The notes: a model not told the origin generated them from the sequence alone. DNA of 64,000 bases from Bugula neritina (GCA_964035545.1 OZ037773.1:8895751-8959750); one strand, 5' to 3'; counted from the stretch's first letter, positions 155 through 53,156 are shown. Translations and numbers: made by a program.

Positions 155-303
155 GAAAGCAGAGGAAGATAGTAGGCAATACCCAAGACTTGCGCCACCT
201 TCTAAGGCAACCTGTTCCTGCTGGTATGTGTGTAGTGGAAGGACAACTCTGGGTAACACCTTTCTTCCGCGGACTAATAAAATTTAAAATTAAGCAACAA
301 TAA
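155..303 (+). CDS. Terminal coding exon of an upstream array paralog (copy 0); last beta-propeller blade; rest of gene lies before the window
   Basis: Acceptor tgtag| at 154, phase 1. Reads (G)KQRKIVGNTQDLRHLLRQPVPAGMCVVEGQLWVTPFFRGLIKFKIKQQ*. Same 149-nt length and GMCVVEGQLWV motif as exon 20959-21107; also matches 32075-32208. Confidence 0.85.
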
Positions 304-759
304 TTGTGTTCTGTTTGCAGTGTACATGTCTTGTGGAAACAAAATTGTGTATTAAGTGACTTCTATGTTACGTGTTGCAATTTACACTGTGTAGTTTAGT
401 TGACACTCTGCTGTATAGTACATTTTATACATGATTTATAGGTCATTAATGTGACAACAACAATTACCTTTCACAGTTATTTGCCTTTTTTGTATCGAGA
501 TTTTAGAGTTGTCTCCTTTTTCAACCTATTGATTCCTAATATGTTCAGTAACTTATATAGAAATATCACCTTAACTATGATAATAACAAACTCTCTAGAT
601 GTAGACTGTATGGGATGAACTTTTTTAAATGCATGAAGATGATTATACTATTCAGGTCAGAGTCTATAGTTCACATTATATCCCATGTGTGTCTCATAAA
701 TTAGTTGTATGCACTGTTTTGTAATCAAGGAATCAATTTGAATCTAGATTTATAGTAGC

Positions 760-1045
760 TAGTATTATTTAGTTGTAGTAGTATTATTTAGTTGTAGTAG
801 TATTATTTAGTTGTATAGTAGTATTATTTAGTTGTAGTAGTATTATTTAGTTGTAGTAGTATTATTTAGTTGTAGTAGTATTATTTAGCTGTAGTAGTAT
901 TATTTAGTTGTAGTAGTATTATTTAGTTGTAGTAGCATTATTTAGTTGTAGTAGTATTATTTAGTTGTAGTAGTATTATTTAGTTGTAGTAGTATTATTT
1001 AGTTGTAGTAGTATTATATTGTTGTAGTAGTATTATTTAGTTGCT
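760..1045. repeat. 19-bp minisatellite (tagtagtattatttagttg)n
   Basis: About 15 tandem units. A shorter array of the same unit sits at the paralogous site ~32658-32752. Confidence 0.95.
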
Positions 1046-1687
1046 AATAATAAAAATGATAAAATCCAAACAGTTGTGAAATCATCTAGCAATGTGCTAT
1101 ATTAATATAAAACTCATGCAAAGCTATAATTGATGAGAGAAGAAACAGCAAGTCTATAGTTGGACACAGAGATTGAGCTAACTGATTATTGCAAAAGTTA
1201 CCAGTGTTGAATACATAATTTTATATATATTTATAGTATATTGAATTGTCTTCCCCTTGACCTACATGTACCATGTACCTCTACATGTCAACAAAGTAGT
1301 AGTTCTCTTACTTCGATCAGCATACTAAAACATAGAGGCCATGCAGTGACTTCCTGTAAACTAGTAATAATAGTGATGACCCTGCAGGAGGAGAAAACAC
1401 CTCTGAATACAACTGATATATAATTTATATAGTCAGCACGTAGCTGGGAACTGGGACTAACATATTCAACAGTTATAAGCTCAGTTACACCCTTCTAGAA
1501 TATTCTATTCTTATATCACACTTATAGTTGACAGTCACTCTGTAAGGTGGAAATGTACTCATGTGTCTTATCTCGTTTATTTGTATTAACATAGCTACGG
1601 AGATGAAACTGGAAGATGACTACTAAACAGTGGGGAAGAACTGGGAAAAACCTAACATGCAGTCACGTGACCATATACTCTTGAGTA

Positions 1688-3017
1688 GGGGTAACGGGGG
1701 CACAACGGGCCGAATTTTGCATTTGTTGCTCTCATTCGTCTGTTTTTCAAGTTACTAGTTCAATAATTTCTGGTCTTAATGCTTCATCTGTTGTCTATTA
1801 CAGGTACCAGTTTGTTGTTTCTATCTCTTTCACAACTTTCAGAATAATGAAATTTTCATGACGAAAAAATTGGCCCATTGTGCCCCGGTACCGGGGTACA
1901 ATGGGCCACTGGGTAGGACACAACAAATATATTGAAATTTTGCGTATTTTGTTACATCTGATCTTTATTTATTTAATATTACAAATAAATAAAGATACTC
2001 TTTCAGATCTACAGCAAAATTCATGTTTTAGCTGTACAGTTTGTGCCACGACAGATAGCAGAGGAAGGCAAAATCAAACACACGTCACTAGGTTATGCAG
2101 TGCGATTATCATTACTGTTTAGAACTAAAAATGTTCTGTTATTTTCACTTCAGAGGAACGTTTATTAAAAAAACTTGTAGTAACAGTAGTAACATGTATT
2201 ACAAAATTCCGAGTGGACTTTTTTTTATGAACTGTAGCTAAGATGCATGCATGGCTGAGGTTTGTGACTGGAGTGCGGAAGGGAGAGGGGAGAGCAAATG
2301 AGCGAATCACAATTTATTTCAGTCAAATACATGTATATTCCCTCAATGGTGTAATATATAATGATTATCATGACTATATCTACTATAAGTAGCAACAGCA
2401 GAGTGTTTTGTATTATGTATAAAATGGCAAAGCTTTAACCTCACCAGATGTATATATTAGGGGAGCTTCAACTTGTAGTTTCGTAGTCTTACCATGATGA
2501 CTTTGATATTTTACAAAAAGGTCAGAAATGGCCATGTCTATAAATTTTAGTAACATTTCAACCAACTTTTTGGGCACACAAACTAATAACAGTGATCAGG
2601 GTGCATTAATCAGGTGGCCCATTGTGCCCCGGTCAGTGTGGCCCATTGTGCCCCGGATGGCTAAATTGAAAATAAATGTGCCTCAAGGAAAATTTATTTC
2701 AGTGTTTGCTGTTATACTTGTTAAGCAATGTAGAGACAAGCAATGGCAACCATATTAGTAAAATATAGGCTTCTTGCCTTTGAGTGTAAAAAATTATAAA
2801 GCTTTAACGACATCCTAAAAAATTTACAAAAAGTAGGTAAAAACAGTTTTTCACTCGCCTTTTTAACACATATGTTCCGCAAGTGTTGAAACTACAAACG
2901 CTGAATAATTATGTCAATATCTTTTTAAGAAAAAAAAATCACAACTCTAAGTCAATAAGTTCTCTCACAATTACGCCGGCTTTTTGTACCCCTATGACCG
3001 TTGTGCCCCGTTACCCC
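1688..3017. mobile_element. Non-autonomous DNA transposon with TA target duplication (Tc1/mariner-pogo type)
   Basis: TA|GGGGTAACGGGGGCACAACGG ... CCGTTGTGCCCCGTTACCCC|TA; internal repeats ggcccattgtgccccgg; no transposase ORF; second copy at 16141-18807. Confidence 0.9.
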
Positions 3018-4218
3018 TATTATCATTTATACTGTAGCAAGAAAGCAACTGCCTGATTTAAGCTAATCTCTAATAGGCTCTTTTATTAGGAGAAAATATC
3101 TTAGGCACCCAGCTGAAATGCACATATAAACCTTACAGAATTTAGTGAATTTCGTATATTATTGATTGGAATCTTACTCATTGTCAGATCACCACTTATT
3201 TTCACTACATACTAACTCAATGTCTTATTAACAATGTTTATCATAAGTATACTATTTCGTTTTATCAGCCAATTGAACAGTTGAACAGATATGATCTTCA
3301 ATTTTTTTTCCACAGGTTGTAAAAGCACATAATTATGTTAGGAAAAATATCAGAAGTATACAATGCTTACTTTCAACCCCTATTATAGCTTTAGATCAAA
3401 CTTTTTTTAGTTTTCCTTTAATGACTTTCAGAATGGCAGCTTGCAGCTAGCTAGAGAATTTCTTTTTAATTTACTTAAATGAAAGCATTTCAAAAAGCTG
3501 TGAAGTTCACATGATAATATATGAATTATCTAGCAAATTTATAGATTACGAATTTCATAAGAATCAGTCAGTATGTATATCTGTAATGTGGGAATATAAA
3601 AAACCTGTCAATTCACTACATACTTCTACTTGCATGTTTAGTATGTAATACATTGACATACAGAGTCACAGCTAAAAATAGGAGTTATCAGTACACCAAC
3701 ATAATACTTGGTGGAAAAGAAATTTGTTGTGAGTTCTATGAATTTGTTTGCTTAAACTTGAGCAAAAGTTGCTCATTAAATATATATTATTATTTCAGTT
3801 ACAAATGTGTCAAAATGGTAGCATATATTTAATGAATATATAGGTAAATACAATATAATATAGTTATAATTTTTAGGTTTGTATGTGGGTATTTTTGTAT
3901 GATCCAATTGGCGCATTGTAGACAGTTACGTAAACTCCAAATGATTATAGCGTGAGAATAATAATAATATGATAATGTGTATCGTTTATACAAGATACAA
4001 TAATAAGAAAACTTTACATCAGTCAGAAAGCTAATGCAATTGTTTACACAAGTGTTTACTGTTAGCCCAGCTAGTCCTTTCTGACACCTGAGAATATTTT
4101 CCCTCGTTACCGTAGGCTAGCCTTCATCCCGTTTGGAGAATTGAGGAGCAGTCGCACATCATCAGCCACGTGGTCGCTGTATGACAAACGGGGCAATATA
4201 GGAAAACGCTATGACTAG

Positions 4219-4435
<217 letters not shown>

Positions 4436-4442
<7 letters not shown>

Positions 4443-4636
4443 GAAATAAAATGAGATTTGATTAATATAATGGCATTTATTACTAGTAGTTTCGTACACA
4501 AGAACGATGTGCACTCGTCAGATAAATTAGCCACATAGTGGCTAATTTATCTGACGAGTGCACATCGTTCTTGTGTACGAAACTACTAGTAATAAATGCC
4601 ATTATATTAATCAAATCTCATTTTATTTCTTCTAAT
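4436..4636. repeat. Perfect palindrome, 99-bp arms with a 3-nt loop (probable foldback/MITE remnant)
   Basis: 4436-4534 is the reverse complement of 4538-4636; loop ATA. Confidence 0.9.
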
Positions 4637-4705
4637 GTTTACGCTCTAGATTTATTTCTATAGAGCACTCTAGTAACGTTTTATAAACACTCATTTTACT
4701 ATATA

Positions 4706-7268: not shown

Positions 7269-7341
<73 letters not shown>

Positions 7342-8650
7342 TCACCTCGAAGTTCCATGACCCATTACAATATAGGTAAATTAAAATAGCTGCTATAATA
7401 TAATACTACAAGTACAATGCAGTGTAAGTGGTTATTATTTAATAGACAAAGGTATTTAATATAGACTAATATTTATGTGTGGACCTGCAGTAGATGAGAA
7501 ATACAAGATGACTTGTAAGTCTGTACAGGATGTGATGTCACAGAGCAACAGGTATATTATGGTAAATCTTGCGTTACTTTCTCAATACTTTGGAGTTGTC
7601 TTCACACACAGTGTGAAATAAAATACGATTTAAATGAGTCTACATAGTATAATCCTGTGTAATAGTTAATTTTTACAAACATATCGGATTAAAAAGTAAA
7701 TGAATTTTTTCTGAATGAGTGGTTTTTATTCATGTCACAGCCTTTACTTGTCTTATTGTTTGGCGTCTAAGAACACAGCTTCTTGAAGCAATTAATTCAG
7801 TCTAATGAATGAGAATAGTCTGTTGGCAGATTATAGAGGCGTAGAACCAAAGACATTATGGTACTAAGGCTAATCATAACTATACTTAGATTTAACTATT
7901 TGAATATAATTATTATACTAAACAAAGCACTACTTAGCCTGAGAATATGAAGGTACTGAAGCTATAATGTTGATGAATGAGTTGGTTTTGATTTCTAAAG
8001 CTGCGAGCAAATGAATCAAAAATGCTTAATTTACTGGTCAACAACTGTGCTGTTATTCTGAAATGAGAATGTATATAAATTGTTTTCTTAACATTCAATA
8101 TAAGGTTTTGCTGAGCTGCTCAGTCTATGCAATCACAATTATCAAAACATTGTTATGGGTTTATTTAAAAAAGTCTACCAATACACTAATTACAGGCTTG
8201 ATTGGCTTTTGCTTTTAAAATTTTAGACTTGAGGCGAAAGAAAACAAAAGTGAAGCTTAGCATGAGAAATCTTATACAAACATTAGTATGACAAAAGCTT
8301 AAGTTTAGTTTTTGTAAGGGTTTTTCAGAAGTTTTGATTAGCTATTGTAGACTAAATTATTGTTTTAATTATGTTGGGTGCAACTTGTTGAAAGTAACTG
8401 TGAAGGGTAATGACAAAAGCAGTAAGCAGTCAATTGTTGTATAGGCATTACAATTTGAGTATAAAGAACAAATCGATGAGAGGGAGAGTCTATATTATAG
8501 CAGCTAGTAGCTGCATGAGTGCTATTTAGTATTCAATATCTGATTGTTGAATAGGCTTCAAACGTGTATATAAGTTTCTAAGAATCCTCGAATACGTCTG
8601 GCAGATGAGTGTATTTTAATTATTCTTTACATATTATATACATTGTGGCA

Positions 8651-11600
8651 ATGGAACAAGCAGTATCAGAAAGCTCTGGATCTGTGGACTTTAAAGGATG
8701 TAGTGACATACCACTCTGTGTTCTGGTTACAAGTAGAACTACTACTCTGCTTAAACGTGGCATAGCAACTCTTCTAGTGAGAAACACTCAATTTGATGCA
8801 GCAGACCTGTTTCACAATATTGTGAAGTTTCACTCTGATGGTTTGTCTGTAGCTGTTTTAAAAGAGATCAACATTATTGCTACTGTTTTGTCAAAGTTGC
8901 ATCACCCTAACCTTGTGGATATCCAAGGAATTCGTCTTGACATCTCATGGGATCATAAAAATAGAGTCCTCCAAAATGTGCCAAGTTCTTCAAAAATCCA
9001 GCTAAAGAACATTGAAGACAATCTAATACAAGAGATAAGCTCTGGTATCCAACTTCTGGAAGATGACATCATCAAATCTTCCCCAACTGTAGACACCCTG
9101 ACATTTGTAGAAGAAGCTATGACGAAACTCCAGTCCCCCACACCAGCTGAACAGAGAGAAGCCATAGAAGGTCTGGTGGCAGGACTAGTGGCTGGTGTCC
9201 TTGATAAATCTCCTCTCAGTCTGACACGTCTGAGAGACATGTTCCAGGGTGAATTTCCAGAAACTGTAAATGAGTGTCTTCAATATATAGACAGTAGTCA
9301 CTCTCAAATATTGGATAATGGTGGAAAGCTTGAAGGAGATCATGAAATACAAGAACTTCTGGCTCAATACAAGAGATGTGTGAAATTCTTTGTTGGTGAT
9401 TTAAGATGTCTTCCATTCAAATCATCAGATATTGTAAGTTCTTCCTATTAGAAGTCTACAACATAAATAAATGAGACAAAATCATAATAGTATTTGCAAA
9501 GCTTATAAAGAGTTTGCTATTATTTAACTATTTACAAGCTTGCAATAATTTTTAATATTGCAAGCACCTAAAAAGATTATTTCTATAAGCAAGCACTAAA
9601 AGTTTTACACCTATAGCTACCATCTTTGAAAATAAGTATAATCATACAAATGACCTTGATTTTGAAATTAAAATTTCTCATCAGTCTACTTGTTGTTTAG
9701 ATGTTTGAACTGTTTGACAAACTTTTCCTCAATGCTGAAAGCTGTAATGCCATATTGTAAAACTCCGACCAATTCTTTATCATTGTATAATTTTACAGAT
9801 CACCAAAGATCTGGTGGAGATGAGGCCAACTGCTGAAGAGTTGACACTCATTATTACAGGATATGATTGGTGAGTGACTCAATATGTACACCAGTTTAAC
9901 TACCTTCTGTTCTCTTACTTTGCAGAGTAGATAAACATATTGGCTCCTACTGTAATGTACACTAAAATATAATATTCTCCTCTGTCAGGGTGATTTCAAG
10001 AAGAAAGAGCTCTGATAACACAGACACAGATAGAATCAACTTGCTGGCAAAGTAAAATACTATATATTTATATCCTAGTGTTCATTGTGGTGTTAGCTAA
10101 CTTTATATATTTTGCCAGTTTCAAATAGTCCAAAGCTTTATACAGACTATACAAAGTAATATGGTGATTACCAGGATGTTTATATGTTTCCAGAGAACAG
10201 CATTCTATCTGGAGACAAGCCAACCACCATCTGGCTGGTTTATTAGATGGTAAGGAGTCTGGTGCCTTAGATGAGACTCCTGGAGACACTGAAGAGCTGC
10301 AAGAGAAGGTAACTCTATAAGTAAATCATAACTATTAGCCTAGGGCCACACGGTGCGTATTTTCGCATGCAAAAATTGAAATCACGAGCAAAGGTGTCCA
10401 CTGTGCGCGTTGAGAAAACGATCGCACTTGTTGCTCTGCATTCTCAACGCAAGTGCGAATCGTCTCTGTCGTCGTCACCTAATTGGCTGGTATAGTTATT
10501 CAGCGAGCCCAATTTTTTTATTTTAGTGCTACATTCCAGTAAATTGCGTTTTATTAAAAGCGAGTGCAATTTAAAAATGAAAGCTTTATTTATCACGCAT
10601 CACTGACGCTACAGTGGACACCTTTGCTACTTGTGATTTCAATTTTCCCATGTGAAAATACGCACCGTGTGGCCCTAGGCTTAGTTTATAATCTTGATGC
10701 TGATAATCAATACTCTATAACACATGTCATTAACCATGCTAGGGATTTTTTGATAAGCTTTGAAATGCTTTCAACTCAAACCAAATACAGTTTATGAACA
10801 TGGATAATGTATATATGTTACTGGAATGAGTTATAAAACTAACTGTAGCCATTGTATGAAATAGCATGCCATTAAAGCAATCTTTGAGGCCAAAATGAAT
10901 TTTATTTTATATTTTTATAGAATACTGATTTGACTACACAAGAAGTAAACAGTCCTGCACAAACCTCTTCTCAAAGTAAGTACAATAAACTTGTGCTCCA
11001 GTCATTTTTCCCGAATTATGATTAAGTATCAGTACTGATACCAGAATGCTGTTTGTAACAGTGTATTGGGTCTTCTATGAGTTTATTTCATTACGGTCTT
11101 TTATTAGCAATTGCTCTTTACTAATGAGATATTTTATTGTACATATTCTGACTAATACTAACAAAATAGTAATTGCTAGTATACGACAGTTTCATTTTAG
11201 ACAATATGCATTACACCTAGACAAAACTACTCAAATTATGATTATTTTGATGCATCTATAAGACCTACAGATTAATTTCCCCTTAAATTATTTTTTTTAT
11301 TATGAGCAGGAGGAATAAATTTCTTCATTACAGAAAAATTAGTTCACTTATAAAAGGCATATTTTCATTATTAGCCTTTTATTTCAGCTACACCCACTTC
11401 AAAGCATCTGGGTGGCCTTCAAACAGTTCCTTCAGATGTCCCACTGTGTGTTTTGATTGTGAACAGAATTAGAACATTGTTGGTGAAAGCATTAGCCTTT
11501 CAGTTGGTTAGAAAATCAGAATACAACATGGCCGACCTTATTGATGGACTTTCTTCAGTACTTCCTGCCGATTATGGTAAAACCAGCATCAAAGAGCTCA

Positions 11601-14600
11601 ACATCATTGCTAAAATCATATCAAAGATTCAACCTAGAGAAGCAGTAGAAGGTCAGAAAACTCCCGGCATCATTAAATGGGACAACAAATACAACAGATT
11701 GAAAAACGTTCCAACAGGGTTGAGAGTTCAACTGGCAAGTCTTCCATCTTGGTCACTAAAAGTCCCTTGCTTGAACATCTCTTTATTAGAAAAAGACATC
11801 ATCAAATCTTCTCCAACAGTAGAGACATTGACACTTGTCGAAGAAGCTATGAAGAAACTGGAGTCTCCCACACCAGCTAAACAGATAGAAGCCATAGAAG
11901 GTCTGGTGGCAGGACTAGTGGCTGGTGTCCTTGATAAATCTCGACTCAGCTTGACACATCTGATAGACATGTTCCAGGGTGAATTTCCATCATATGTCAT
12001 AAACCTCCTCAAAACTATCAACAATAACCAAGTCCAGATAATGGATAGTGGCAAGAAGATTGAAAATATGGAGTTGAGAGAAGACCTTATCACTGCATTC
12101 AATGATTGTGTGACTTTTCTTATAAAAGACTTCAAGTGTCTCCCAGTCACAGCACCAGAAGAGGTTAGTATGTTAACATAGCATGTTTTGTTTGCTGCTT
12201 TTAATAGTCATGAAAAGTGGTAGATTTTAGAAAGACAATACAGATATTTAAAGTAGCTATTATAATTTTTATTTACATCTCCAAAATTTTATTTTGTGGC
12301 TATAGATACTGTAAACTTCAATCACAGTCGCTATCTCCCTGATAATCCCTGATTGAAAGTTGTTTTCAAGGTGTTGAAAACTTTTTTCTATTGTGGCTAA
12401 TGCCTTTTCTAACATATAACATTTGCTGAGATTAAACTCATTGACATTCACTTATAAGCCAGTGCTCTAACTACTAGACTACTGCTGCTCTTGTGAGCAG
12501 TGTGGAGCCACCATAACTTCTTGGTTTGTAAACAGAATGCTACACAGTTGGTTTAAGGTCATACTTTTCATTTTCTGGCTCTTTGCCAGGTGCTTTATGT
12601 TCTATATGAACAATGTTCCACTGATAGCTCGAACAGGTTGAATGTCACAGGAACAAAAAAATATGAAAAAATAAAGAAACTTATGTTCTCCAATATACTT
12701 TTTTATTTTTTTCAAAAGCCAATTCATGTTTAAGTTATAGCTTGTTGAAAAACATAGTCCCCCTTCCACATTCTTTTCAATTTATACGCTCCTGACTTGT
12801 TATTGTGTCTCAATATGCCTTGTATTTGAGTGCTTGTTAGTCTCGCTTCACTAACTTTGCCTATACTTCACAAGTGCCAGTGCTGCTGGCTCAAAAGCTA
12901 AATGTTATAAACTGTCAGCTAAAACCCAATCTTGTATTCCTAGGTTGGTTGGCCTAAATAAAACAATAGTCAAATCATGATTTCATGTTTTAAAAATTTA
13001 CTCTATTCTAACCTGCTGCCTAGCTAGTTCTATTTTTGATGTATAATTACAAAATTTGTGATACATTTTTTTGGCAACCATGTAATTTATAAAATGCAGT
13101 AATGGTACTTATAATATTATATTATTATCATTATAATATATTATATAGTATTATGTGTGTTTTTATTATCCTGCATAATATCTAATTTATTATTGTTGTT
13201 GTGCAAACAAGTGCAATTAACCTAGTTTTCAAAATGTACCTCTAAATTATCAGAATATCAGTTTAGATATGTTCATGCTTTGTAAGGTAAACCTAAAAAA
13301 AGAGGCTGTATTCCCAAAGTAAAGGGTGTTGAACTATGAACTATATTAGATTAGCCACTCTGCTACCAAGTGCATCAGTATAATATTATATGAATAGCTC
13401 TGATGCTTTGTCTCCGGTGGCTGGCTGCGATATGATAACTTGGCCAACTTCCACGAGTTTAAAATTGGCGCAATTATTCAAGAGGTTACATACTGCACAG
13501 AGCTAGCAGTGATAGTAACCTTGCTATTGGCAGTACTTATTACAACTGCCAGCATATAAGCTGCATTGTAGAATGCCGTTGGGGCAGGCTAGTAAAACCA
13601 AATTCTGCTCTCTAATATACCTTAGACAAAATGCAGCAACATAATTTTTAGTTTCAAATTACATTTGCCACCCTTACATGAGCTGTGGGCTTCATAAAGA
13701 TTCATATGATTAGAGATTTATGCTATAGGCCCTATCTGTGCTAGTGTATGATGAAAATAACACACCATTGTCAAAGTTAACTTCAAGTATGTTGTTTTCC
13801 AGAAACTCAGTAATGTCCATTTATCTCTCGCATACAAATACTTATGTAATAGCATACAGTTTAAGTTTTATTTTAGAGCACATCTGCAAACTCTACAATA
13901 AGAGCTTGCTTTACCAGTCTATTTCAGACCTGTTTTTGTAGCTAGTAATACGCAAGCTACTTATTTTTAAACTTTTGGGTTATTTGTTCAAAACCATTAG
14001 CTTTGCTAGTAACCCGAGACTATTGCAACAGTTGACTGCTATCAACATGAATTGACAGCCTAATAATTATAACCCTTTTGCGGCGCGAAATATTTATGTA
14101 ATGATAGTTACTCATATAGTGCGCATTTTATTAACGATGACTGCGTGGTCTAGAGGTTAGAGGCGTCAGCGAGGAGTTAGTTGGTTATGGTTCACCCCTG
14201 TTTTGTCGCAATTTTTTTTGTCAACTTATGCAAATCCTACGCATGTATAATAAATATGGCTATAATTGTAAAGTTTTTTTTTAACTTTTGTTCAACAGTA
14301 AGACAACATACATGCATAATAATTAGATACTGAACACTGGACTAAACCTGAAATTGATCTTATAGAATACAATGTACTTAAAATAATCATATGTTAATTA
14401 GAGAAACTGAAAGTTCACCTGCTGCTCTATAGACAGACCTTTACTGACAAGACTGCAAAGTGAAGTGATTTAGCTGAAATTAACTCTGCCAAACAAACAA
14501 AGAATTATGTTGTGCTGAGGCATTTTCAATATATTATTGTAACATAGTGAGATGATTCAGCTAAGTGCTAATGTAAAACAGGGAACATTATATTGGCAGA

Positions 14601-24708: not shown

Positions 24709-27700
24709 ATGGCACAGGCAGTATCAGCAAGCTCTGGATCTGTGGACCTTAAAGTATGGAGTGACATACCACTCTGTGTTCTGGTTACAAGTAGAACTAC
24801 TACTCTGCTTAAACATGGCATAGCAACTCTTCTAGTGAGAAACAGTCAGTTTGATGCAGCAGACCTGTTCAACAATCTTGTGAAACTTTACCCTGATGGT
24901 TTGTCTGAAGCTGTTTTAAAAGAGATCAACATTATTGCTACTATTTTGGCAAAAGTACATTATCCAAACCTTTTGAATATCCAAGGAATTCGCCTTGACA
25001 TCTCATGGAATCATGAAAATAGAGTCCTCCAAAATATGCCAAGTTTTTCAAAGGTCCAGCTAGAGAACATTGGAGATAATCTAATACAAGAGATCAGCTC
25101 TGGTATCCAACTTCTGGAAGATGACATCATCAAATCTTCTCCAACAGTAGAGACACTGACACTTGTAGAAGAAGCTATGAAGAAATTCCAGTCTCCCACA
25201 CCAGCTGAACAGAAGGAAGCCATAGAAGGTCTAGTAGCGGGACTAGTGGCTGGTGTCCTTGATAAATCTCCACTCAGCTTGACACATCTGCTGGACATGT
25301 TCCGTGGTGAATTTCCAGAAACTGTAAATGAGTGTCTCCAGTATATAGACAGTAGTCACTCTCAAATATTGGATAATGGTGGAAAGCTTGAAGGAGATCA
25401 TGAAATACAAGAGCTTCTAGCTAAATACAAAAGATGTGTGAATTTCTTCATTGGTGATTTAAGATGCCTTCCACTCAAATCATTAGATATTGTAAGTTCC
25501 TTATATTGGAAGTCTACAACATAAGTAAATGAGACAAAAAATATAATATTATTTGCAAAGCTTATGAAGAGTTCGTTATTATTTAACTATTTACATTCTT
25601 GCAATAATTTTTTATGTTGCAAGCACCTAAAAAGATTATTTCTAAGCAGGCACTAAAAGTATTGCACCTATTGCTACCATTTTTGAAAAAAGGTATAATC
25701 ATACAACTGACCTTGACTTTGAAATTAAATTCCTCATCAGTCTACTTGTTGTTTAGATGTTTGAATTGTTTGAAAACCTTTTCTTCCATGCTGAAAGCCC
25801 GAGGTGCTATATTGTACAACTCCAACCAATTGCATATATCATTGTATTTTTCAGATCACTAAGGATCTGGTAGAGATGAGACCAACTGCTGAAGAGTTGA
25901 ACTTCATTATCACAGAATATGATGAGTAAGTGACTCAATATGTACACCAGTTTAACTCTTTCTATTCTCATACTACACAATGTAGGTATAAGTGTATAAG
26001 CTATTACTATAACACTAAAATATAATATTATATTCTGTCAGGGTGATTTCAAGAAGAAAGAGCTCTGATGAAAGAGATGCAGATAGAATCAACTTGCTAG
26101 CAAGGTAAGAGACTATGTATGCATATCCTAGTGTTTACTGTGGTGTTAGCTAACTTTATATAATTAGTCAGTTTCAAACTGTCCAAAGTTATGAAAAGTA
26201 ATATGGTGATTACTAGATTTTTTATATGTTTCCAGAGAACAGTATTCTATCTGGAGACAAGCCAACCACCATCTGGCTGGTTTATTAGATGGTAAGGAGT
26301 CTGGTGCCTTAGATGAGACTTCTGGAGACACTGAAGAGCTGCAAGAGAAGGTAACTCTATAAGTAAATCATAACTAGTAGTCTATAATCTTGATGCTGAT
26401 AATCAGTACTCTATAACACATATCATTAAGCAAACTAGGGATTTTTTGATAAGCTTTGAAATGCTTTCAACTCAAACCAAATACATTTTATGAACATGGA
26501 TAGTGTATATATCAGTTACTGAAATGAGTTATAAGAATAGCTGCATGCGTGTGCCATTGTATGAAATAGCATGCCATTAAAGCCATCTTTGAGGCTAAAA
26601 TAAATCTTATTTTATATTTTTATAGAACACTGGTTTGACTACAAAAGAAGTAAATACTTCTGCACAAAGCTCCTCTCAAAGTAAGTACAATAAACTTGTG
26701 TCTCAGTCATTTTCCTAAATTATGATTAAGTTCTAGCATTAGTACCAGAGTACTATTTATAACAGTGTATGAGATTTTCTATGAGGTTATTTTATAGCGG
26801 CCTTTTGTTAACAATTGCTCTTTACTAATGAGATATTTTATTGTACATATTATACTAACTAATACTAACAAAGTAGTAATTGCTAGTATACCCCAGTTCC
26901 ATTTTAGACATTATGTATTAGACTAAGTCAAGGCTACTCAAATCATGATTATTTTGATGCTTCTAAGACCTACAGATTGATTTTCCTTTAAATTATTTTT
27001 CTTGTGACATTATTTTATTGTGAGCAAATCATAGCTTAAATTTTTCATTACAAAGAAAGTAGTTCACTTATAAAATGCATGTTTTCATTATTAGCTTTTT
27101 TATTTCAGCTACACCAGCTCCAAAGCATCTGGGTAGTCCTCAAACAGTTCCTTCAGACATTCCGCTGTGTGTTTTGATTGTGAACAGAATTAAAACATTG
27201 TTGGTGAAAGCATTAGCTCTTCAGTTGGTTAGAAAATCAGAATACAACATAGCCGACCTTATTGATGGACTTTCTTCAGTACTTCCTGCCGATTATGGTA
27301 AAACCAGCATCAAAGAGCTCAACATCATTGCTAAAATCATATCAAAGATTCAACCTAGAGAAGCAGTAGAAGGTCAGACAACTACCGGCATCATTAAATG
27401 GGACAACATAAACAACAGATTGGAAAACGTTCCAACAGGGTTGAGAGTTCAGCTAGCAAGTCTTCCACTTGGGCCACTAAAAGTTTGTTGCTTGAACATC
27501 TCTTTATTAGAAGGCGTCATCATCCAAACTCTACCAACCGTAGAGACATTGACACTTGTAGAAGAAGCTATGAAGAAACTCCAGTCCCCCACACCGGCTG
27601 AACAGAGAGAAGCCATAGATGGTCTGGTGGCAGGACTAGTGGCTGGTGTCATTGATAAATCTCCATTCAGTTTGACACGCCTGATAGACATGTTTTGTAG

Positions 27701-30700
27701 CGAGTTTCCACCATCTGTCATAAACCTCCTCAAATTTATCAACAATAACCAAGTTCAGACAATGGAAAGTGGCAAGAAAATTGAAGATATGGAGCTGAGG
27801 CAAGTACTTGTCGCTGCATTCTATGACTGTGTGATTTTCCTTATCAAAGATTACAAATGTCTCCCAGTCACAGCACTAAAAGAGGTTAGTATGTTAACAT
27901 AGCATGTTTTGTTTACTGATTCTAATAGTCATGAAAAGTGGTAGATTTTATGAAGACAATACAGATATTTAAAGCAGCTGTTATAATTTTTATTCACATC
28001 CCCAAAAGTTTATTTTTTGGCTATAGATACTGTAAACTTTCATTACAATTGCTATCTCCCTGAGAACCCCTGATTGAAAGTTGTTTTCAAGGTGTTGAAG
28101 ACTTTTTTCTATTGTGGCATTTATGACAGAAATCCTTTTTTAACATCCAACATATTTTGCTTCAATTAGACACATTGACATTCACTTATAAGCCAGTGCT
28201 CTAACTACTAGACTACTGCTGCTCTTGTGAGCAGTGTGGAGTCACCAGAACTTCTTGGTTTGTAAACAGAATGCACGAGTAGTTCTATCAGATAAAATAA
28301 AAGTGAATTCTTGGTATAATTAAAATGTTGGAACGTCTGGTAAAAAAAGGTTTTCATCATGGGGCTAGAGATTGTTTTTTTATTCTGGCATTTATGTCAG
28401 CATGCCTTTTGTAACATCACTGATGGTTTTTAATAAGAGTAGACTCACTGACGTTCACTAAGCCACTAAGCAATGTGGATCTATCAAAACTTTTTGGTTT
28501 CTATCAGAATGCTATAGAGTTCCATCAGATATAAAAAAGTGAATTTTTGGTAGAATTAAAATGGACAGATTTGTAACTATAGTAGAGCATGAATCCATCC
28601 GCTCATTTCTGAGCCATTTTATTTAGTTTTTAATATCCGATTGCTTAAAGCTTGCTCTGAACTCAATCACTGCCATCATTGTTGCAGGCTTGTAATGAAT
28701 ATCTACAACTCTCTTTAACTGCAGATGAGTGGAAAATGACATTCTCACAGCATGACAGGTAATATGAGACAATACACAAGCTATTATTCCTCATCACAGC
28801 TCTTGCAATATATGGACTTGGCTGAAATATGTATATGTAAATAATCTACATGTATAATATAAGTAAATCAACAGTTACACTCTCTGAGATGAAAAGTATA
28901 GTTGGTTATTTGATTAAATATAAGCTATAATGTTTAATTCAAAAAATTATATTTATGTCGCTTATTACTGGAAAGTTTTCTTGTGCAACTTATTACTATA
29001 CTTTCCCTGAAACTCAGATATCTTCAATTCTTTTCAGCAGCAATAATAACTGTTTCTTGAAAACATAGCTGTGATAGTTTTAGTCAAAATCCACAAACTA
29101 AAAGTGCTAAAATATTTTCTTCTCCACTTCAGAATTATCACAAATATTGACAACACTGATGGAGCTAAGACAGAGGAAATCAATCTTTTAGCAAAGTAAG
29201 ATTTTGAGCCATTATTAAATATTAATATCTGGACAATTGTTTACTTATATTAATTTACAAGTTTCACTATTCTGAGGCCATAGTTCAAGTTGTATCTGGT
29301 TGTAGTGAACAGTTCAGTTTATGGAAAAAGACAAATCAGTTGCTGGGAGATTCTATTGAAATACCAAACATTGCTGACATAAAACGCATCTACAAGGTAA
29401 TTGACAACTATAGAGCAAAGCAAATTGTTCTACTATAGTTATATACTACTAGCTCTAGTACAAGTAGCAGTTGTAGCAGTTGTAGTAGTGGTGGTGGCGA
29501 TGGCGGTGGTGGTGATGGTATCATCAGCAGTAACCATTTAAGGATATAGCTTAGTTGCTTTAGTTGGTCTGACCAGAATAGCTGAAGAAGTATTATATCA
29601 TGTGCTTTATATAATTTGATTGCTTGGTAAATTATCAACCTTGATGGTTCCATTTATGTTTTTGTTATTCCTTGTACTATTTATAGAAGAAAGATGAATA
29701 TTCAACACAAGTTGGAGGAGCTGTCGGATACAGCAGCTCTCAACTTGAAGGTGTGACTCTGATGGAGAATCTGAAACTAGGTGAAAGAGCTGCCAAAGAC
29801 AGCATCTCACAACGTAAAGGTATGACTATAATGTATAGCATGTCGTAAAACATTTTAAGTAATATGAACTACATTTATGCTAAATAATTAATTAGTATAA
29901 TTGGGGTATTGAACCTGCAAATTTGAGATCAGTTAGATTGTCTTATTCTGAGCAAGAGTCTTTGTGTGATGGTTAGCGAACGTATATACTACTCTCACGT
30001 GTTGGGCATCCAATAAGACTGAAGCACGTGATTACCCCTTCCGGAACAGGATGCTTCAGTAAGACAGATAGAGTAGTTAATTAGTAGGAGCGCGTTAGTA
30101 AATGTAGTAGGCTTGTATTAGATTGTAAATGTATTTTCGACACTGGATGTGTCTCTCTTTATTTTATATGAGTACAACAAATATAGTTCATTGTGTCACG
30201 CTACCAACAGAGTAATTCATCTAGTTACTAAGTGAATCCACCATCATTGCACACACGCAGAACCCACCCTAAGATGATAATTGGCAGAATTATTACATTT
30301 GTATACAGAGTTGTCTTCTTAGCTGCTGTGTAAAGTAATGATACTACAGTTAATTGCTATTTCTGCAAATTGAATGCAAACAACCATGAGTGTACAAATT
30401 GCTTTATATAATATTTTATGTGTATTTTATACAATATTGAGTTATAATACATTAAAGCATTCATTTATAAAATTTGCTTAAAAGCTTTATTCATTCTAAT
30501 ATATTCATTTATAATATAATCTGTTAATATATGTATTGTTGCAGCTGGTACAGATTTTCCGTACAGTCTAGATGATTACTCTGTTATCTTGGAAAGTTAC
30601 TGCTATGACGTAGCTGATGGTGGAGGGCATACTATACTAATTAGTAGATGGAAAGGGTTTGATGTATTGGATACTAGTAGTAAAGTATCTGAATCTAGCA

Positions 30701-32208
30701 GTAGTGTAGGAGGGAGGAGATATGAGATAGTGAAGTCTGTCACAATAGAAGAAAGTGGTTTTATTCGGTCAATACAGAGATATGAGAGCTGTATATATAC
30801 TCTGTGTAGAGTAAATGGTCAGCTACAAGTAGTAGTGTTTGATGCTAACACATATGTTGAAGTAAAGAGATGGTCTGTACCAGAGATTGTAGGATACCTT
30901 ATTAAACTAGCTGTGTGTGATGAGAAGGTATATATAACAGATTACAGACATAAACGGCTAACTGTATTCTCTACAGATGGTAAACATCTCACTAATATTA
31001 CACAGTCTATAAGTTTCATTGAGCCCTCTGCCCTCTCTGTATGCCCTCCACACAGTATCATCATATGTGACTTCTCAGCTGACAGAGTACATAAACTAGA
31101 CACTACAACACATGACATCATATGGAGTTCTACTGCAGTGAAGATACCTGTAGCAGTATGCTGTGACCACACACGTGGAGAAGTGTGGGTGTTGTCTTGT
31201 TATACTGACTCTCTGTTCATTCTAGACTCTGAGACAGGTATGCAGCTAATCATGTTTATTGTAAGTTTAATGCCACCACATACTATATATATAGTTTGAT
31301 GTATATGTTGTTTCGGTGTAAATAGGGCCTGTAATACGGACAGGTTTCAAATCTTAACTTTGTGCAATTTTTATATGGCTAATAATTCTGCTAAACCATG
31401 CAGCATATGAGACAATATGAGACAATAGTAATACAACTTCTGAAATTATAGCCTTGTAATTTCTATATACCCAACTTAATGCATACTTGACTACATTAAA
31501 TTTCAATTACTTTTTATTATTGCAAACAGGCCTAATATAATCATATTTCGGTCCCCTTTGTTAGGCTAGTTTTATCATTCTCCTAAGAAAGTTCTTGAAA
31601 CATAATGGCAGTTTTACTCCATATAAGCTACATTCTGTTTAAAAGTAGAACATCTCCTTCAGCATAGAACCTTGTGTTCCAGAGAGCCCTGCACCATGTG
31701 GTTATTGAGTCTAAACGCATGTATAAAATTTAATATAGTATATAGTCCATATAAATATATAATTAAACATATTAAGGTAGAAGTTAATTGTATATTTGCA
31801 ATAAATGTGTAGACTGTAGAGTTATCTCATCACAACAGTTGGAAAACTTTATGGTAATAACTGCTGCAGCATATCAGCTAAACATTCTAATCATGAAATG
31901 AATGAAATTTTTTTCAACTCATATGAATTCTAGATTCTAGAACAAACATTACTATTTGACTTTCTGGTGCCATTTATATGGAAAATATAAATTATAAGTT
32001 ATTTATTATTTTCATGCAAAGGTAAAGCTTGAATTTGGAATTTAATAAAATATATATACTAATACATTTTGTAGGAAAGCAGAAGCAGACAGTAAGCAGA
32101 AGAGAAGACTTTTTATCTTCTCCTTTTGGTATGTGTGTAGTGGAAGGACAACTCTGGGTAGTATCTTCCTTCAGCGGACTAATAAAACATAAAATTGTCA
32201 CCCACTAA
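24709..32208 (+). CDS. Array gene copy 2: two degenerate HEPN-like modules + NHL-like beta-propeller (~1015 aa)
   Basis: Exons 24709-25491, 25855-25925, 26042-26104, 26236-26350, 26626-26680, 27109-27884, 28688-28758, 29133-29195, 29306-29396, 29687-29819, 30545-31237, 32075-32208 (3048 nt, open). Same phases as copy 1. Confidence 0.85.
29965..30297. mobile_element. Solo LTR (TGTGAT...ATTACA, 4-bp TSD TTTG)
   Basis: tttg|tgtgatgg...attattaca|tttg; absent from the matching intron of copy 1 (~19180). Confidence 0.8.
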
Positions 32209-35899: not shown

Positions 35900-36161
35900 G
35901 TATCACTAATAATTTTTAAATACTTTAGGTTTAACTTTTACTTTACTTTAGGTTTAAGTAGAACTAAAATTCACGAGTTTGAGTTCATTTGACTTTCAAG
36001 TTTAGTTTTATGAAAAGTAAAACCATTAATATGTTAACAATAGCAGTTGAATTTGATGTTATATTGTTATTAATATTTAAAGTTTTTCTAAGTATAATAA
36101 TGATTTTGATATTCATATTTATATTATTATTAATATCATTATCATTATGAGTATAATATTG

Positions 36162-36612: not shown

Positions 36613-37471
36613 TGTTTTTTAATTTAGCTCAGACTGAAGCCACACAAACTAACGCTGCTGTGCTATATGAATGTTTTATGTTAGTAGCACAATACGTTTT
36701 TTGGAAGAATGACTTTTTTGTGTTTAAAATAAACCTGACTTAAAATTTGCATTTTACTTTATCATTATGGTTGCCACTGCAGCATGGTTAACTAGGCATG
36801 TGCAGAGCGGAAGTCATGGACACCTATGAAGCTAGTTCAAACTATACCAACATTTTCAAAGTACATGTTGTATCGAAATAGTAATTTTAATAATCAGACC
36901 TCATAAAAGTTTTAGTATTATTGTGTGTAAACAGTTTTAAGTTGATGTATTTATAGCAATAACGTGCATAATTTAGTAAACTTAATTTAGAGTTTAGGCA
37001 ATGCTCATAGAGCTTATTACCTTATTGTCACTGTGGCGATATTCAGATAGAATAGAGTTGCCCTGCGTGCAAACCAACATGATATTTAATGTATTACTGT
37101 ATTAGGTGTGGGGAAGTGTTGAAGGAATTTTTTAAATTTAATCAATTTTAAAATAAAAATGTCTAATAAATTGTGCTGTAAAATATTTCTAAGCACAAAA
37201 GAACTATATGCTATTAAGCATTGCAATATTATGCAGTTTTTGATTTAATTAAGTCTGCCCTACACACATCAACTTCAGAGCTACGAATTATTCTGATTTT
37301 TTATTCGATCTTCTGTATATAAATTCCTTTATTGTTTAAGGCACCATTTCATTTCAATATTTTGCTTCGTAAGGTGTTTTAGCTTTAAACATTTGGGTGC
37401 AATTTATGATTTTTTAGCCTAGAGTTCTTGCCCTAATTTATTCTAGTTTCTTTTTTAGATATTTATGAGAA

Positions 37472-40400
37472 ATGGCCATCAGAACAGATGCTAGCTATAA
37501 TGACATAGGATTCTGTGTGCTGGCTGGTTGCAACACTGAAGCTGTTCTTCGCCAGTCCATAGCCTCTGTGTTGATCAGAGAATTGGATTCAAACTATCAT
37601 CGATTAGCAGATGTGGTGGGGCGAAGGGTAAACTTTCAAGATGACAATGACTATATAGATCAAATAATCCAAGTGGCCAACACTATTACTGGAGAGCATT
37701 CCGTGGAAGATTGGGAAAACTTAAAAGGTAAAATTCTTGGAAAATTTACAAGACCCAAGTCGTTATCATGCGTTCATCTGTCAGAACTGATTGACGCTGT
37801 GGAGAAAAGCTGGAGTGTTGACCATCGAAGTTGTGTAGATGAGTTGATCTTCGGGTTACTACAGCTTGCTCTTCAAAGTAAAACACTCGACAGGCGATAC
37901 CGTTACACTTTTGCTGATTTGATCAAAATGGTGTGCCCTGGTAAAGCTGATACTGTTGGTTTACCGCTGTTTGCCAACTCTCCCATTTCTAATCCTATGA
38001 CCCCAGGAGTATGTGGTAGACTGCACAATGTCAAAAAAACTCGCAATAACATAGTTCATGAGGTTCTTCATTTTACTAGTGAGAGAAAAGAGTTTGAAAT
38101 CAATTACACACGTGCTGTGAATTTCTGTGTTACAAATTTCAACTGCTATCCACTAATAAAAGAGGTAAAATATTATAGCATGTTGGAAATATAGTTGAGT
38201 GATTTTGTTTAGCTTTTAATATTATAAACACATGTTGATATATGTTAAATGACAATTATTTATACATTTTGTATTGTAAAAGAAAGCCTGAAGTTTCTGT
38301 TGTAGACTGTGTTAGATGACCTTCAAAATATTACACTAAACCTACCTGGCTATGGCGCGATTAAAGATGCTTATGAAATGTAAGTAGATGAAATGCAAAT
38401 GAACCAAACTTTGGACCGTTTGCTATAACTTTGAGGTTTTGGATAAACCTTGTGCTATGTAAGATTTTGTAGTATCTACTTGTAGTTAGACTGAGAGTAA
38501 TACTATAGTATCTACTAGTAGTTAGACTAAGAGTAATACTATAGTATCTACTAGTAGTTGGACTGAGAGTAATACTATAGTATCTACTAGTAGTTGGACT
38601 AAGAGTAATACTATAGTATCTACTAGTAGTTAGACTAAGAGTATAGTATATACTAGTAGTTAGACTAAGAGTAATACTATAGTATATACTAGTAGTTAGA
38701 CTGAGAGTAATGCTATAGTATATATTAGTAGTTAGACTGAGTGATGCTATAGTGTCTACTAGTAGTTGGACTGAGTGATGCTATAGTATATACTAGTTGT
38801 TAGACTGAGAGTAATACTATAGTATCTACTAGTAGTTAGACTGAGAGTATAGTATCTACTAGTAGTTAGACTGAGAGTAATGCTATAGTATCTACTAGTA
38901 GTTAGACTGAGAGTATACTATCTACTAGTAGTTAGACTGAGAGTAATACTATAGTATATACTAGTAGTTAGACTGAGCGTAATACTATAGTATCTACTAG
39001 TAGTTGGACTGAGTGATGCTATAGTATATACTAGTAGTTAGACTGAGCGTAATACTATAGTATCTACTAGTAGTTAGACTGAGCGTAATACTATAGTATC
39101 TACTAGTAGTTGGACTGAGTGATGCTATAGTATATACTAGTAGTTGAACTAAGAGTAATGCTATAGTATATACTAGTAGTTAGACTGAGAGTAATGCTAT
39201 AGTGTCTACTAGTAGTCGGAGTTTAGCTCTCTTGTTGACTCTGTTGTAGGTCAGCAGCACAAAAAGGTCTATCTGCAGGAGAGATCAAGTCTCGTTTAAA
39301 GTTAGTCTCTTTTATTATCTTCTAATCTAGTGATCAGTCAATAAGATTATGAATTTGTGTCGATTGGTAGCAGAGTTTGGTTACATGAAGCTGATTTACT
39401 AATGAAACTATTTGTGAGAAATTGGTAACTTACAACTTGACAGAATTGAATTGCTCTCTAAATCGTAATATATTGGATATTGTTAAACTGATTTTATAAA
39501 TCTCTAGCCTATTAATTAGAAATCTGGAAAATTATCTAATAAGTACAAACAATGTTTATGTTCAAGCCAATGGGAACACCAATATAATGCCTAATATTAC
39601 CTCAATATCTTCTTAACTTCCTCTCAATATTTCCACAACGTCCCCTCCTATATTTCAAGAATTTTCCCGGCATGATTCTTGCATAGAAAGCGTTTAAGGC
39701 AAATGTTCTCAAGAAAAGCAACTTTTGCTGAGCTTAGAAATTTGCTCAATTTCGTTGGACCCCCAGTTTGTCTCGATTTTTATTCAATTTTAATTCTTTC
39801 TTCCTGGTAACGTTACCAAGCATAAGCTGCTCTACAAGGGTCATTCTTTACACGGATACACTGAAATAGAATGTGCTTCATGAAGGTGTAGTTTTGGTAA
39901 TGGTTTGCATTTATTTGGTAACTATTTTGTTTGTAAGTTTGTAAGAAATCAGAAATATTTATTTGTGATTAGCTATAAGTAGTTGAAAAGTTATTGATTT
40001 TAAAATGTTTTATTCTCGCAGGAAATATGATATGTGATGCGTGAATTAAAAGGCTTATGCTGTTTAGAAAAAGGATATAAATTAGCACTTTGCTTTGACT
40101 GGCATGGTTATCTTATTCTACCTTACTATCACCTGCAGACAACTGGAAACTTTACAACGGAGAGCTAATAAGGCAGTTGAGAAACTTGATAAGGCTATTC
40201 GGTATCAGGAAAGAGGAGATTTACCTCGATCTCGAGCTGAAATGTTGGAAGCAAAAGGACTCCTGACTGCAGGTATAATAATCAATTGCTTTGTTCAAAC
40301 ATTAAGTACAGTTTAGCATTTTTACTGTTCTGCTTTCAGCCCTATTTCACTCTGTACTCTCTATTTCACTCTGTACTCTCTATTTCACTCTGTACTCTCT

Positions 40401-40922
40401 ATTTCACTCTGTACTCTCTATTTCACTCTGTACTCTCTATTTCACTCTGTACTCTCTATTTCACTCTGTACTCTCTATTTCACTCTGTACTCTCTATTCC
40501 ACTATGTACTCTGTATTTCACTATGTACTCTCTATTTCACTATGTACTCTCTATTTCACTCTGTACTCTCTATTTCACTCTGTACTCTCTATTTCACTAT
40601 GTACTCTCTATTTCACTATGTACTCTCTATTTCACTCTGTAATCTCTATTTCACTCTGTACTCTCTATTTCACTATGTACTCTCTATTTTACTCTGTACT
40701 CTCTATTTCACTATGTACTCTCTATTTCACTCTGTACTCTCTGTTTCACCCTATAAACTCCTAATACATTACTGTTGGTCTCAGGAATATAGTATTGGTT
40801 ACCCGCTTTCTAAAAATAGACTGAATGTTGAGAAAGGGCAGAAAACTCCGACAATAACTTGTGGTACTTTATAATATATTCTAGTTTTGTATTAATTTTC
40901 AGGTGGAAATACACACAAGTAG
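37472..40922 (+). CDS. Putative catalytically intact HEPN-domain ribonuclease (~323 aa); single-module paralog of the array genes
   Basis: Exons 37472-38164, 38306-38379, 39250-39300, 40139-40272, 40903-40922 (972 nt); in-frame TGA just upstream of the ATG. Motifs CVLAGCNTEAVLRQSIA (ExxxR), YTFADLIKM and RLHNVKKTRNNIVH (RNxxxH). Intron phases 0,2,2 match each array module. Confidence 0.75.
38470..39215. repeat. ~36-bp intronic minisatellite (agtagttagactgagagtaatactatagtatctact)n
   Basis: About 20 variant tandem units. Confidence 0.95.
40342..40745. repeat. 19-bp intronic minisatellite (ctatttcactctgtactct)n
   Basis: About 21 tandem units. Confidence 0.95.

Positions 40923-49173: not shown

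Positions 49174-53156
<3,983 letters not shown>

Follow-up and report, generated by a model that had tools for sequence, protein, structure and literature searches.

Background

RNase L is an antiviral protein in which an ankyrin sensor, a pseudokinase and a KEN/HEPN ribonuclease (RNase) share one chain, and its activity needs ligand-induced dimerisation. A comparable link between a repeat domain, sensor-like in kind, and a HEPN-like module was found in an AT-rich stretch of 64,000 nucleotides of the Bugula neritina assembly (C9:8895751-8959750, hereafter the window), which holds part of an array of tandem genes for HEPN-like modules joined to an NHL propeller, followed by a single-module gene of the same family (L005). 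RNase L carries its sensor and active RNase in one chain, whereas the sensor-like chains of Bugula have only apparently dead HEPN-like modules and the putatively active HEPN is a separate gene. The KEN domain has been placed in the HEPN superfamily (PMC3710099).

Other described systems resemble the locus in part. The DZIP3/hRUL138-like expansions (PF18738; Anantharaman et al. 2013, PMC3710099) are lineage-specific animal HEPN proteins in which the domain is fused to recognition or signalling domains and for which a defence role has been proposed; their partners in that survey were TPR, RING, ankyrin, CARD, NACHT, Death and LRR, and NHL was not among them. The Bugula family differs in that PF18738 misses it and in that most of its copies appear to be catalytically dead. 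Two HEPN domains per chain, as in the array genes, occur in Cas13 (an active pair) and in Swt1 (an inactive dyad with a PIN domain); the Swt1 dyad has lost its motif and was proposed to bind or sense RNA (PMC3710099). Unlike these, the array genes have no guide RNA or PIN domain; their dyad leads into a diversifying NHL propeller, and every Bugula module comes with a large helical insert and a tail of helices encoded by three exons. TRIM-NHL expansions also present a C-terminal six-bladed NHL propeller as a recognition module, but the array genes have one or two dead HEPN-like modules instead of the RING, B-box and coiled coil. As conceptual precedents, HepT/MntA (HEPN-MNT), RnlA/RnlB and the sensor/helper pairs of plant nucleotide-binding leucine-rich repeat receptors (NLRs) show how a linked partner can check or trigger an effector, although the candidate partner in Bugula is a paralogous pseudo-enzyme rather than a nucleotidyltransferase or an unrelated antitoxin.

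Lineage-specific animal HEPN expansions are thus known, and the new element is the combination of HEPN-like modules with a diversifying NHL propeller; within the literature library searched, no paper combined 'HEPN' and 'NHL repeat'. The locus looks like an undescribed lineage-specific recognition system. Its best explanation, to which a probability of about 0.5 was given, is a HEPN-fold family of Bugula in which the array encodes diversified recognition proteins, each with one or two dead HEPN-like modules and a variable propeller, and in which L005 is likely an RNase.

Gene organization of the array

With flanking DNA added to the window, the array on C9 was found to consist of five tandem genes, all on the plus strand, three of which (A, B and C) fall at least partly inside the window. 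The plus-strand order is L006, g1, g2, A, B, C, L005, where g1 and g2 each encode a module and a propeller, A, B and C each encode two modules and a propeller, L006 is a single-module gene upstream of the array, and L005 is the single-module gene of the window, with the motif RNNIVH. Tandem module-module-propeller genes beside a single-module gene had been described by the original prediction; the strings that it quoted are present, and genes B and C are intact. The parts of the array genes in the window are as follows.

155-303, plus strand: gene A, last propeller exon and stop (from translation; homologous to 32075-32203 and 20959-21102)
8651-10308, plus strand: gene B, module 1 (exons 8651-9433, 9799-9869, 9989-10051 and 10194-10308; motif column SSHSQILD)
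10921-10975, plus strand: gene B, inter-module linker, 55 nt, Ser/Thr-rich (homologous to gene C exon 26626-26680)
11388-16115, plus strand: gene B, module 2 (exons 11388-12163, 15293-15363, 15833-15895 and 16025-16115; motif column NNQVQIMD)
18898-21102, plus strand: gene B, linker 18898-18961 and predicted NHL propeller exons 19389-20075 and 20959-21102 (weak NHL/DUF5128 Pfam matches)
24709-26350, plus strand: gene C, module 1 (four exons; RNA junctions 25925>26042 and 26102>26234)
26626-26680, plus strand: gene C, inter-module linker, phase 0 to phase 1 (RNA junction 26680>27109, GT..AG; matching loose contig ends)
27109-29396, plus strand: gene C, module 2 (RNA junctions 27873>28686, 28755>29130 and 29195>29306)
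29687-32203, plus strand: gene C, linker 29687-29750 and propeller 30545-31237 and 32075-32203, with stop (RNA junctions 29394>29685 and 29748>30543; transcripts run beyond 31237)

Gene models were obtained by reading the sequence around the small exons and are phase-consistent. Paralogous large open frames lie on the plus strand at 8609-9451, 11453-12181, 24709-25524 and 27075-27902, and genes B (8651-21102) and C (24709-32203) each have 12 exons in an identical layout. Gene C is an intact open reading frame (ORF) of 992 aa with GT..AG at every exon border (exons 1-6: 24709-25491, 25855-25925, 26042-26104, 26236-26350, 26626-26680, 27109-27884; exons 7-12: 28688-28758, 29133-29195, 29306-29396, 29687-29750, 30545-31237, 32075-32203), and gene B is an intact ORF of approximately 992 aa, also with GT..AG borders. 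Both proteins run in the order module, linker, module, linker, NHL propeller. A module comprises one large exon and, after it, three small ones (71, 63 and either 115 or 91 nt), its intron phases being 0/2/2. Between modules 1 and 2 lies a 55-nt Ser/Thr-rich linker exon (phase 0 to 1), the link from module 2 to the propeller is a 64-nt exon, and the propeller of gene C is split between a 693-nt exon and the terminal exon.

Self-comparison of the window resolved two full tandem units, one for B (7296 to about 21950) and one for C (23455 to about 33030), and the first 1.6 kb resembles the tail of such a unit. The segment 155-303 is the end of gene A, the remainder of which precedes the window, with modules and propeller exon at C9:8888980, 8891895 and 8894347. 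No signal-like or membrane-like segment was found in the array proteins, which is weak evidence, and as judged from their sequences the proteins are probably soluble and intracellular.

A tract of about 200 bp, at 9059-9267, 11789-11989, 25117-25325 and 27510-27718, encodes ...SSPTVETLTLVEEAMKKLQSPTPAEQREAIEGLVAGLVAGV... in the modules. Modules 1 and 2 share 83-90% DNA identity in this tract, compared with only 48% protein identity over the remaining module, which suggests gene conversion between modules or extreme constraint on that helix.

Splicing and expression

RNA contigs from four runs of four different studies were aligned to 25400-31399. Junctions with GT..AG borders were seen at 25925>26042, 26102>26234, 26680>27109, 28755>29130, 29195>29306, 29394>29685 and 29748>30543, approximate junctions at 25490>25855 and 27873>28686, and loose contig ends matched the linker exon and the terminal exon of gene C. 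Nearly all junctions of gene C are thus backed by spliced RNA contigs, and because this set was observed, module 1, linker, module 2 and propeller are joined in RNA. RNA sequencing had been named beforehand as a check, and it showed the array genes to be spliced and expressed. A further junction, 26348>29685, skips module 2 and fits g1 and g2, the upstream one-module genes of the array.

The ab initio annotation of the draft B. neritina genome treats modules 1 and 2 as separate genes, an arrangement that was rejected in view of the phase-matched linker exon and the RNA junctions. In that draft (L003; GCA_010799875.2 contig VXIV02000533.1) the orthologous gene is broken up into three models, of 324 aa (module 1), 66 aa (a fragment) and >514 aa, and the 63-nt exon and the linker exon, both of which are used in the RNA contigs, are omitted.

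The single-module gene and its predicted fold

The single-module gene has the following parts.

37472-38164, plus strand: exon 1, encoding a 231-aa predicted HEPN-fold domain with a helical insert of about 115 aa (AlphaFold2 model; top structural matches HEPN; orthologs P0001-P0003)
37538-37552, plus strand: E23-x3-R27 in helix 1, the second conserved HEPN motif (sequence TEAVLRQ; definition from PMC3710099)
38042-38059, plus strand: R191-N-N-I-V-H196, an Rx4H motif with a polar residue after R (R, N and H invariant in the three orthologs P0001-P0003)
38306-40919, plus strand: tail exons 38306-38379, 39250-39300, 40139-40272 and 40903-40919 (ortholog L001/P0002 spliced likewise)

The exons measure 693, 74, 51, 134 and 17 nt and encode a product of 323 aa (37472-40919). 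A four-exon layout with phases 0/2/2 had been proposed for modules and single-module gene alike; the phases agree in both, but L005 has an extra 17-nt terminal exon at 40903, a fifth exon that had been overlooked. The ortholog L001/P0002 is represented by a 1110-nt transcript contig (SRR4125604) that encodes 317 aa with the same splicing, and its 3' untranslated region matches window 40897-41015. Long tandem repeat arrays fill introns 2 and 4 of L005 (38470-39216 and 40286-40874), and the second of these gives rise to spurious open frames (YFTLYSLFHSVLSISLCTL...) that could pass for coding sequence.

Structure prediction with AlphaFold2 (AF2) gave a predicted local distance difference test score (pLDDT) of 34 for the 240-aa exon with four close orthologs, and a pLDDT of 82.1 with a predicted template modelling score (pTM) of 0.83 for the 231-aa domain with 29 family members. 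The latter model is all-helical, with a long helix at residues 10-38, the insert of about 115 residues, and helices at 178-195 and 201-222. HEPN domains are defined by a core of four alpha helices that accommodates inserts, by an Rx4-6H motif in which R is followed by N, D or H, and often by an E-x3-[KR] motif (PMC3710099); the L005 model is all-alpha with an insert, its Rx4-6H motif has a polar residue after R, and the motifs of L005 agree with this definition in kind and order.

The model was searched with VIA-align against 48,161 representative chains, and at least 10 of the 13 best chains were HEPN proteins. At the top were AF_0298 (2hsb; Z 9.2), the Roquin HEPN (8.9), 1wwp (7.8), the sacsin HEPN (7.5), TT1696 (1ufb; 7.5) and the SO_3166 HepT (7.4). 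Below these come a Cas nuclease, MtlR/YggD, further HEPN toxins and Csm6, so that the best structural matches include HepT toxins. In a second structure ranking, all of the 11 best chains were HEPN proteins. The superposition on HEPN structures (Z 7-9.2) covers about 98 core residues spread across positions 7..227. By a rough offset of the aligned ranges, which is not a residue-level alignment, R191-H196 lies no more than about 5 residues from the Rx4H of HepT-type toxins. The HEPN-like fold proposed by the original prediction is accordingly favoured by a model of pLDDT 82 whose best structural matches are nearly all HEPN. Since no single Z is decisive, the assignment rests on this enrichment together with the motif, and a HEPN fold is very probable.

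Family relationships and loss of the motif

Modules 1 and 2 are 48% identical (E 2e-75). By pairwise BLAST the similarity of L005 to the modules is weak and confined to the N-terminal helix (E 7e-5 over 28 aa), and by profile-profile comparison with hhalign it spans 196 columns with both ends covered (probability 78%, E 1.8e-5). About 24 modules were found in a genome search with both profiles, and all modules of the joint family fit one hidden Markov model (HMM) and one alignment. The tree places the clade of single-module genes (L005, L006 and L007) as sister to the whole set of module-type sequences, and the paralog L033 (on C1; ortholog P0009), which has the long module-type architecture yet carries R-N-x-S-V-H, bridges the two groups. 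The homology claimed between L005 and the modules was therefore upheld by hhalign, by the joint HMM and by the tree through L033. Array modules 1 and 2 are sisters in the tree, and the internal duplication therefore preceded duplication of the array genes.

RNxxxH is absent from every array module, the motif column reading SSHSQILD in module 1 and NNQVQ[IT]M[DE] in module 2; in the C6 and C8 clusters described below it reads KEDVQN/KEDVLN, and in L006 the motif is degenerate (RHQIIL), with the His lost. The E-x3-[KR] motif is present in L005 and its orthologs, is reduced to E without the basic residue in L006 and L007, and is missing from L033 and the array modules. As had been claimed, the array modules are motif-less and their neighbour keeps both E-x3-R and R-N-x3-H; with both HEPN motifs lost, the array modules are predicted to be catalytically dead. 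The further claim that L005 is the only paralog with an intact motif holds within the window but not for the genome, where RNxxxH is kept by three paralogs, L005 (RNNIVH), L007 (RNKVVH) and L033 (RNRSVH). Loss of the motif is the derived state, because RNxxxH is present in both deep clades of the tree.

The propeller and selection on its parts

The open frames at 19511-20104 and 30589-31299 gave weak NHL and six-bladed-propeller matches in Pfam (for gene C, PF01436 NHL, E 3.6e-4, 20.9 bits against a cut-off of 20; DUF5128, a six-bladed propeller, also matches). On this NHL match, the C-terminal region of about 275 aa, encoded by two exons, is predicted to form a six-bladed NHL propeller. A Pfam scan of the four module exons and the propeller exons found no TRIM-type RING, B-box or coiled coil, and the N-terminus is formed by the HEPN-like modules.

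The ratio of nonsynonymous to synonymous divergence (dN/dS) was calculated by the method of Nei-Gojobori on exact exon limits, with bootstrap values for P(dN>dS). Module 1 gave ratios of 0.19-0.70 (mean 0.43, ten pairs) and module 2 ratios of 0.31-0.51 (three pairs), with bootstrap P(dN>dS) <=0.08 for module pairs. The propeller exon gave 0.92-2.07 with a mean of 1.47; the ratio was above 1 in 9 of the 10 pairs, and bootstrap P(dN>dS) was >=0.96 in 4 of them. The propeller had been called hypervariable, a description borne out by this mean of 1.47 versus about 0.43 for the modules. Variable columns (86 of 229) are clustered (runs test z -2.46), with the strongest autocorrelation at lags of 42-44 residues (coefficient about 0.18), the length of one NHL blade, and clustering at the blade period fits a single diversifying propeller face. 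The modules are under purifying selection, and patches of propeller loops, one to a blade, are under positive selection. Synonymous divergence is 0.04-0.11 in the propeller versus 0.13-0.26 in the modules, which suggests gene conversion or a different history of the propeller.

These ratios bear on the alternative that the array is a set of decaying duplicates, in which high dN/dS would reflect lost constraint, and several propeller pairs do lie near 1. However, every one of the 24 exons in genes B and C is intact and bounded by canonical splice sites, RNA shows transcription and splicing of the genes, purifying selection acts on their modules, and some propeller pairs are significantly above 1. 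Decay is largely refuted, and we regard it as most improbable.

Distribution of the family

A third single-module gene, L007, lies on the minus strand at C9:9019354, 86 kb beyond L005, so that the entire single-module clade (three genes, at C9:8.859, 8.933 and 9.019 Mb) falls within 160 kb around the array. Searched with the propeller exon, the genome yielded at least 147 NHL-propeller exons in very large tandem arrays (C6:9.1-11.6 Mb, C3:30.8-31.3 Mb, C8:5.4-5.8 and 10.0-10.35 Mb); propeller diversification is therefore habitual in this genome, and NHL propellers are a major expanded class. Other clusters of dead modules were located on C8 (8.23-8.25 Mb and 7.18 Mb), C6 (15.63-15.65 Mb), C1 (32.88 Mb) and C5 (14.24 Mb). 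The genome-wide propeller search placed no NHL exon beside them, and the genome search with the single-module profile placed no single-module-type gene beside them. Because the other clusters showed neither in these searches, the HEPN-like-NHL fusion and the linkage to single-module genes are observations from one locus.

In the C6 and C8 clusters, modules are paired 3-4 kb apart and adjoin a common 'EQHxLWSxANSH' tail exon (L026 983-1207, L028 1127-1339, L027 3117-3332); propeller-less multi-module genes probably exist there. Directly downstream of the dead module on C1 (32.88 Mb), minus-strand frames resembling a retroelement integrase/polyprotein were noted (L022 2775-3706).

Outside this genome, a module profile run against 1.84 billion representative proteins returned seven matches, of which 5 were Bugula module-type sequences or fragments and the other two were a short fragment and a repeat-protein false positive. 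A profile of 29 sequences run against 5.8 billion proteins returned Bugula-type sequences only, the named match being "hypothetical protein EB796_007686 [Bugula neritina]". By these searches the family appears to be Bugula-specific and to consist of very divergent HEPN-fold domains.

Weighing the explanation

Under the favoured explanation, the propeller would bind a variable ligand, possibly a protein or RNA of pathogen, symbiont or allogeneic origin. Both dead HEPN-like modules of a chain would pair intramolecularly, much as those of Cas13 and Swt1 do, and the paired modules may form a non-catalytic platform for RNA binding or assembly; inactive HEPN domains have been proposed as RNA-binding modules (PMC3710099). 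The 323-aa paralog would act, on HEPN precedent, as a homodimeric, metal-independent RNase, and by this analogy a homodimeric, metal-independent endoribonuclease is the most likely identity of the protein. An immune role of the array proteins is putative, and their functional coupling to the active paralog is possible. Overall, what the original prediction observed is confirmed, and its interpretation is partly supported.

Several results weigh against this explanation. Each Z of the structure search lies within the chance range for helical bundles, which according to the VIA-align warning extends up to about 13. A comparison of the AlphaFold model with the HEPN clan by Foldseek had been put forward as a check, and it gave nothing significant: against the Protein Data Bank (PDB) the L005 model had no match at E <=0.001, and all E-values were >0.5. 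Pfam HEPN models had no significant match in the seven window exons or in any of the 29 family members, one of which reached E 0.06 against HEPN_RiboL-PSP. For the dead modules, the HEPN fold follows at one remove, by probable homology to the modelled L005 (hhalign probability 78%). The pairs compared for dN/dS are not independent of one another, and gene conversion has evidently taken place within the array. Most RNA contigs are 90-95% identical to the window, and many therefore derive from paralogs or from sibling species.

The results on the fold are also those that favour an unrelated helical bundle convergent on HEPN, in which RNNIVH would be a chance or non-catalytic match. The lack of Pfam HEPN matches, the Foldseek E-values all >0.5, and a template modelling (TM) score of at most 0.43, the best in an ESM Atlas shape search that reached unnamed bacterial clusters, are all in keeping with such a bundle, as is the fact that helical models may reach a Z of about 13 by chance. 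An Atlas feature search with a dead module as query gave no usable match, a profile search of PDB sequences gave no match, and PF18738 (HEPN_DZIP3) had no match at E <=5 for any of the 29 members; a genome-wide scan with PF18738 found a single locus, C6:308951, which is unrelated to the family. A convergent bundle is nevertheless unlikely, since both structure rankings of the 48,161 chains are almost purely HEPN at the top, and R-N-x3-H is kept, at the expected position, in the orthologs and in two distant paralogs, with E-x3-R likewise kept in the orthologs. A language-model search, which is a lead only, also pointed to HEPN, returning invertebrate clusters with PF18738 HEPN_DZIP3, PF15112 or PF18731 HEPN_Swt1 at scores of 0.86-0.92.

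If the fold is HEPN, the array proteins could still be post-transcriptional regulators of host mRNAs, in the manner of the TRIM-NHL proteins Brat and LIN-41, with RNA bound by propeller and dead modules alike, and their fast evolution would then reflect targets that relaxed or shifted after duplication, and not conflict. TRIM-NHL propellers are generally known to bind RNA, and expression in ordinary RNA samples from four studies is what such regulators would show. The proposal that inactive HEPN domains bind RNA (PMC3710099) would suit this role as well. We nevertheless hold it to be doubtful, because five young tandem copies whose dN/dS >1 is concentrated in patches, one to a blade, are what recognition arms races typically produce and conserved regulators do not, and because the family was not found outside Bugula data. 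Diversified recognition proteins are preferred.

How such recognition proteins might act on L005 was the subject of the boldest part of the original prediction, in which the dead HEPN pair of a sensor propeller protein binds L005 and keeps the composite Rx4H site incomplete until a ligand binds the propeller. Stated as a split sensor and executioner within one family, a dead dyad would sequester RNxxxH monomers, and ligand would release them to form the active RNase dimer; both versions seem to us improbable. HEPN sites are composite across a dimer (PMC3710099), which such gating would exploit. Every gene of the single-module clade falls in a 160-kb stretch around the sole module-NHL array of the genome, the modules and L005 have common helical tail exons that could mediate hetero-oligomers, and the conservation of the dead modules (dN/dS about 0.43) implies that they must do something. 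Against gating, only one locus shows the linkage, which tandem duplication may have left behind as a relic, and the flanking upstream L006 has no His (RHQIIL). No active neighbour accompanies the dead-module clusters on C6, C8, C1 and C5, the third RNxxxH paralog, L033, stands alone on C1, and two HEPN domains of one chain usually pair together. By analogy, self-pairing of a two-HEPN chain is at least as likely as pairing with a third protein. A complex prediction of modules 1 and 2 with the active domain scored 0.00; alignments were unused and the fold of the partner is uncertain, so that this score counts neither for nor against binding.

Other features of the window

Dispersed repeats that are 87-94% identical occur in introns and intergenic DNA of the array (1686-3018 versus 16139-18408; 3477-4256 versus 22705-23480) and are probably transposon fragments that were copied along with the duplications or inserted later. 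A long TA/TATATA-type microsatellite at 4124-4534 produces poly-(IY) open frames on both strands, and similar tracts lie beside L007, L028 and L031. No tRNA genes were found in the window. Downstream of L005, ordinary housekeeping-like genes were recognized by eye from exon translations at 42700-47400 (minus strand), 49700-53300 (minus strand) and 59350-63620 (plus strand). On the minus strand, we take these to be genes for a histidine acid phosphatase (VFRHGARTP...) and a 26S proteasome AAA-ATPase subunit; the plus-strand gene at 59350-63620 presumably encodes a DENN-domain protein.

Conclusions

To our knowledge, hardly any of the animal HEPN expansions, for which roles as antiviral RNases or RNA receptors have been predicted, has been studied, and bryozoan immunity is essentially uncharacterised. 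The Bugula locus offers a compact case in which catalytic and pseudo-catalytic paralogs coexist in an orphan HEPN family, the pseudo-catalytic members of the array being joined to a propeller that bears a clear mark of positive selection, with a probable active RNase adjoining. It extends the range of HEPN partners to NHL propellers and indicates that an NHL propeller can sit on a non-TRIM N-terminal chassis. B. neritina hosts a bryostatin-producing symbiont, and a diversified intracellular recognition family is for this reason of interest for symbiont control. If a pseudo-enzyme does gate its enzyme here, this would amount to a logic not seen before in animal innate immunity and to an animal counterpart of paired NLRs or of toxin-antitoxin abortive infection, with the pseudo-enzyme as the gate.

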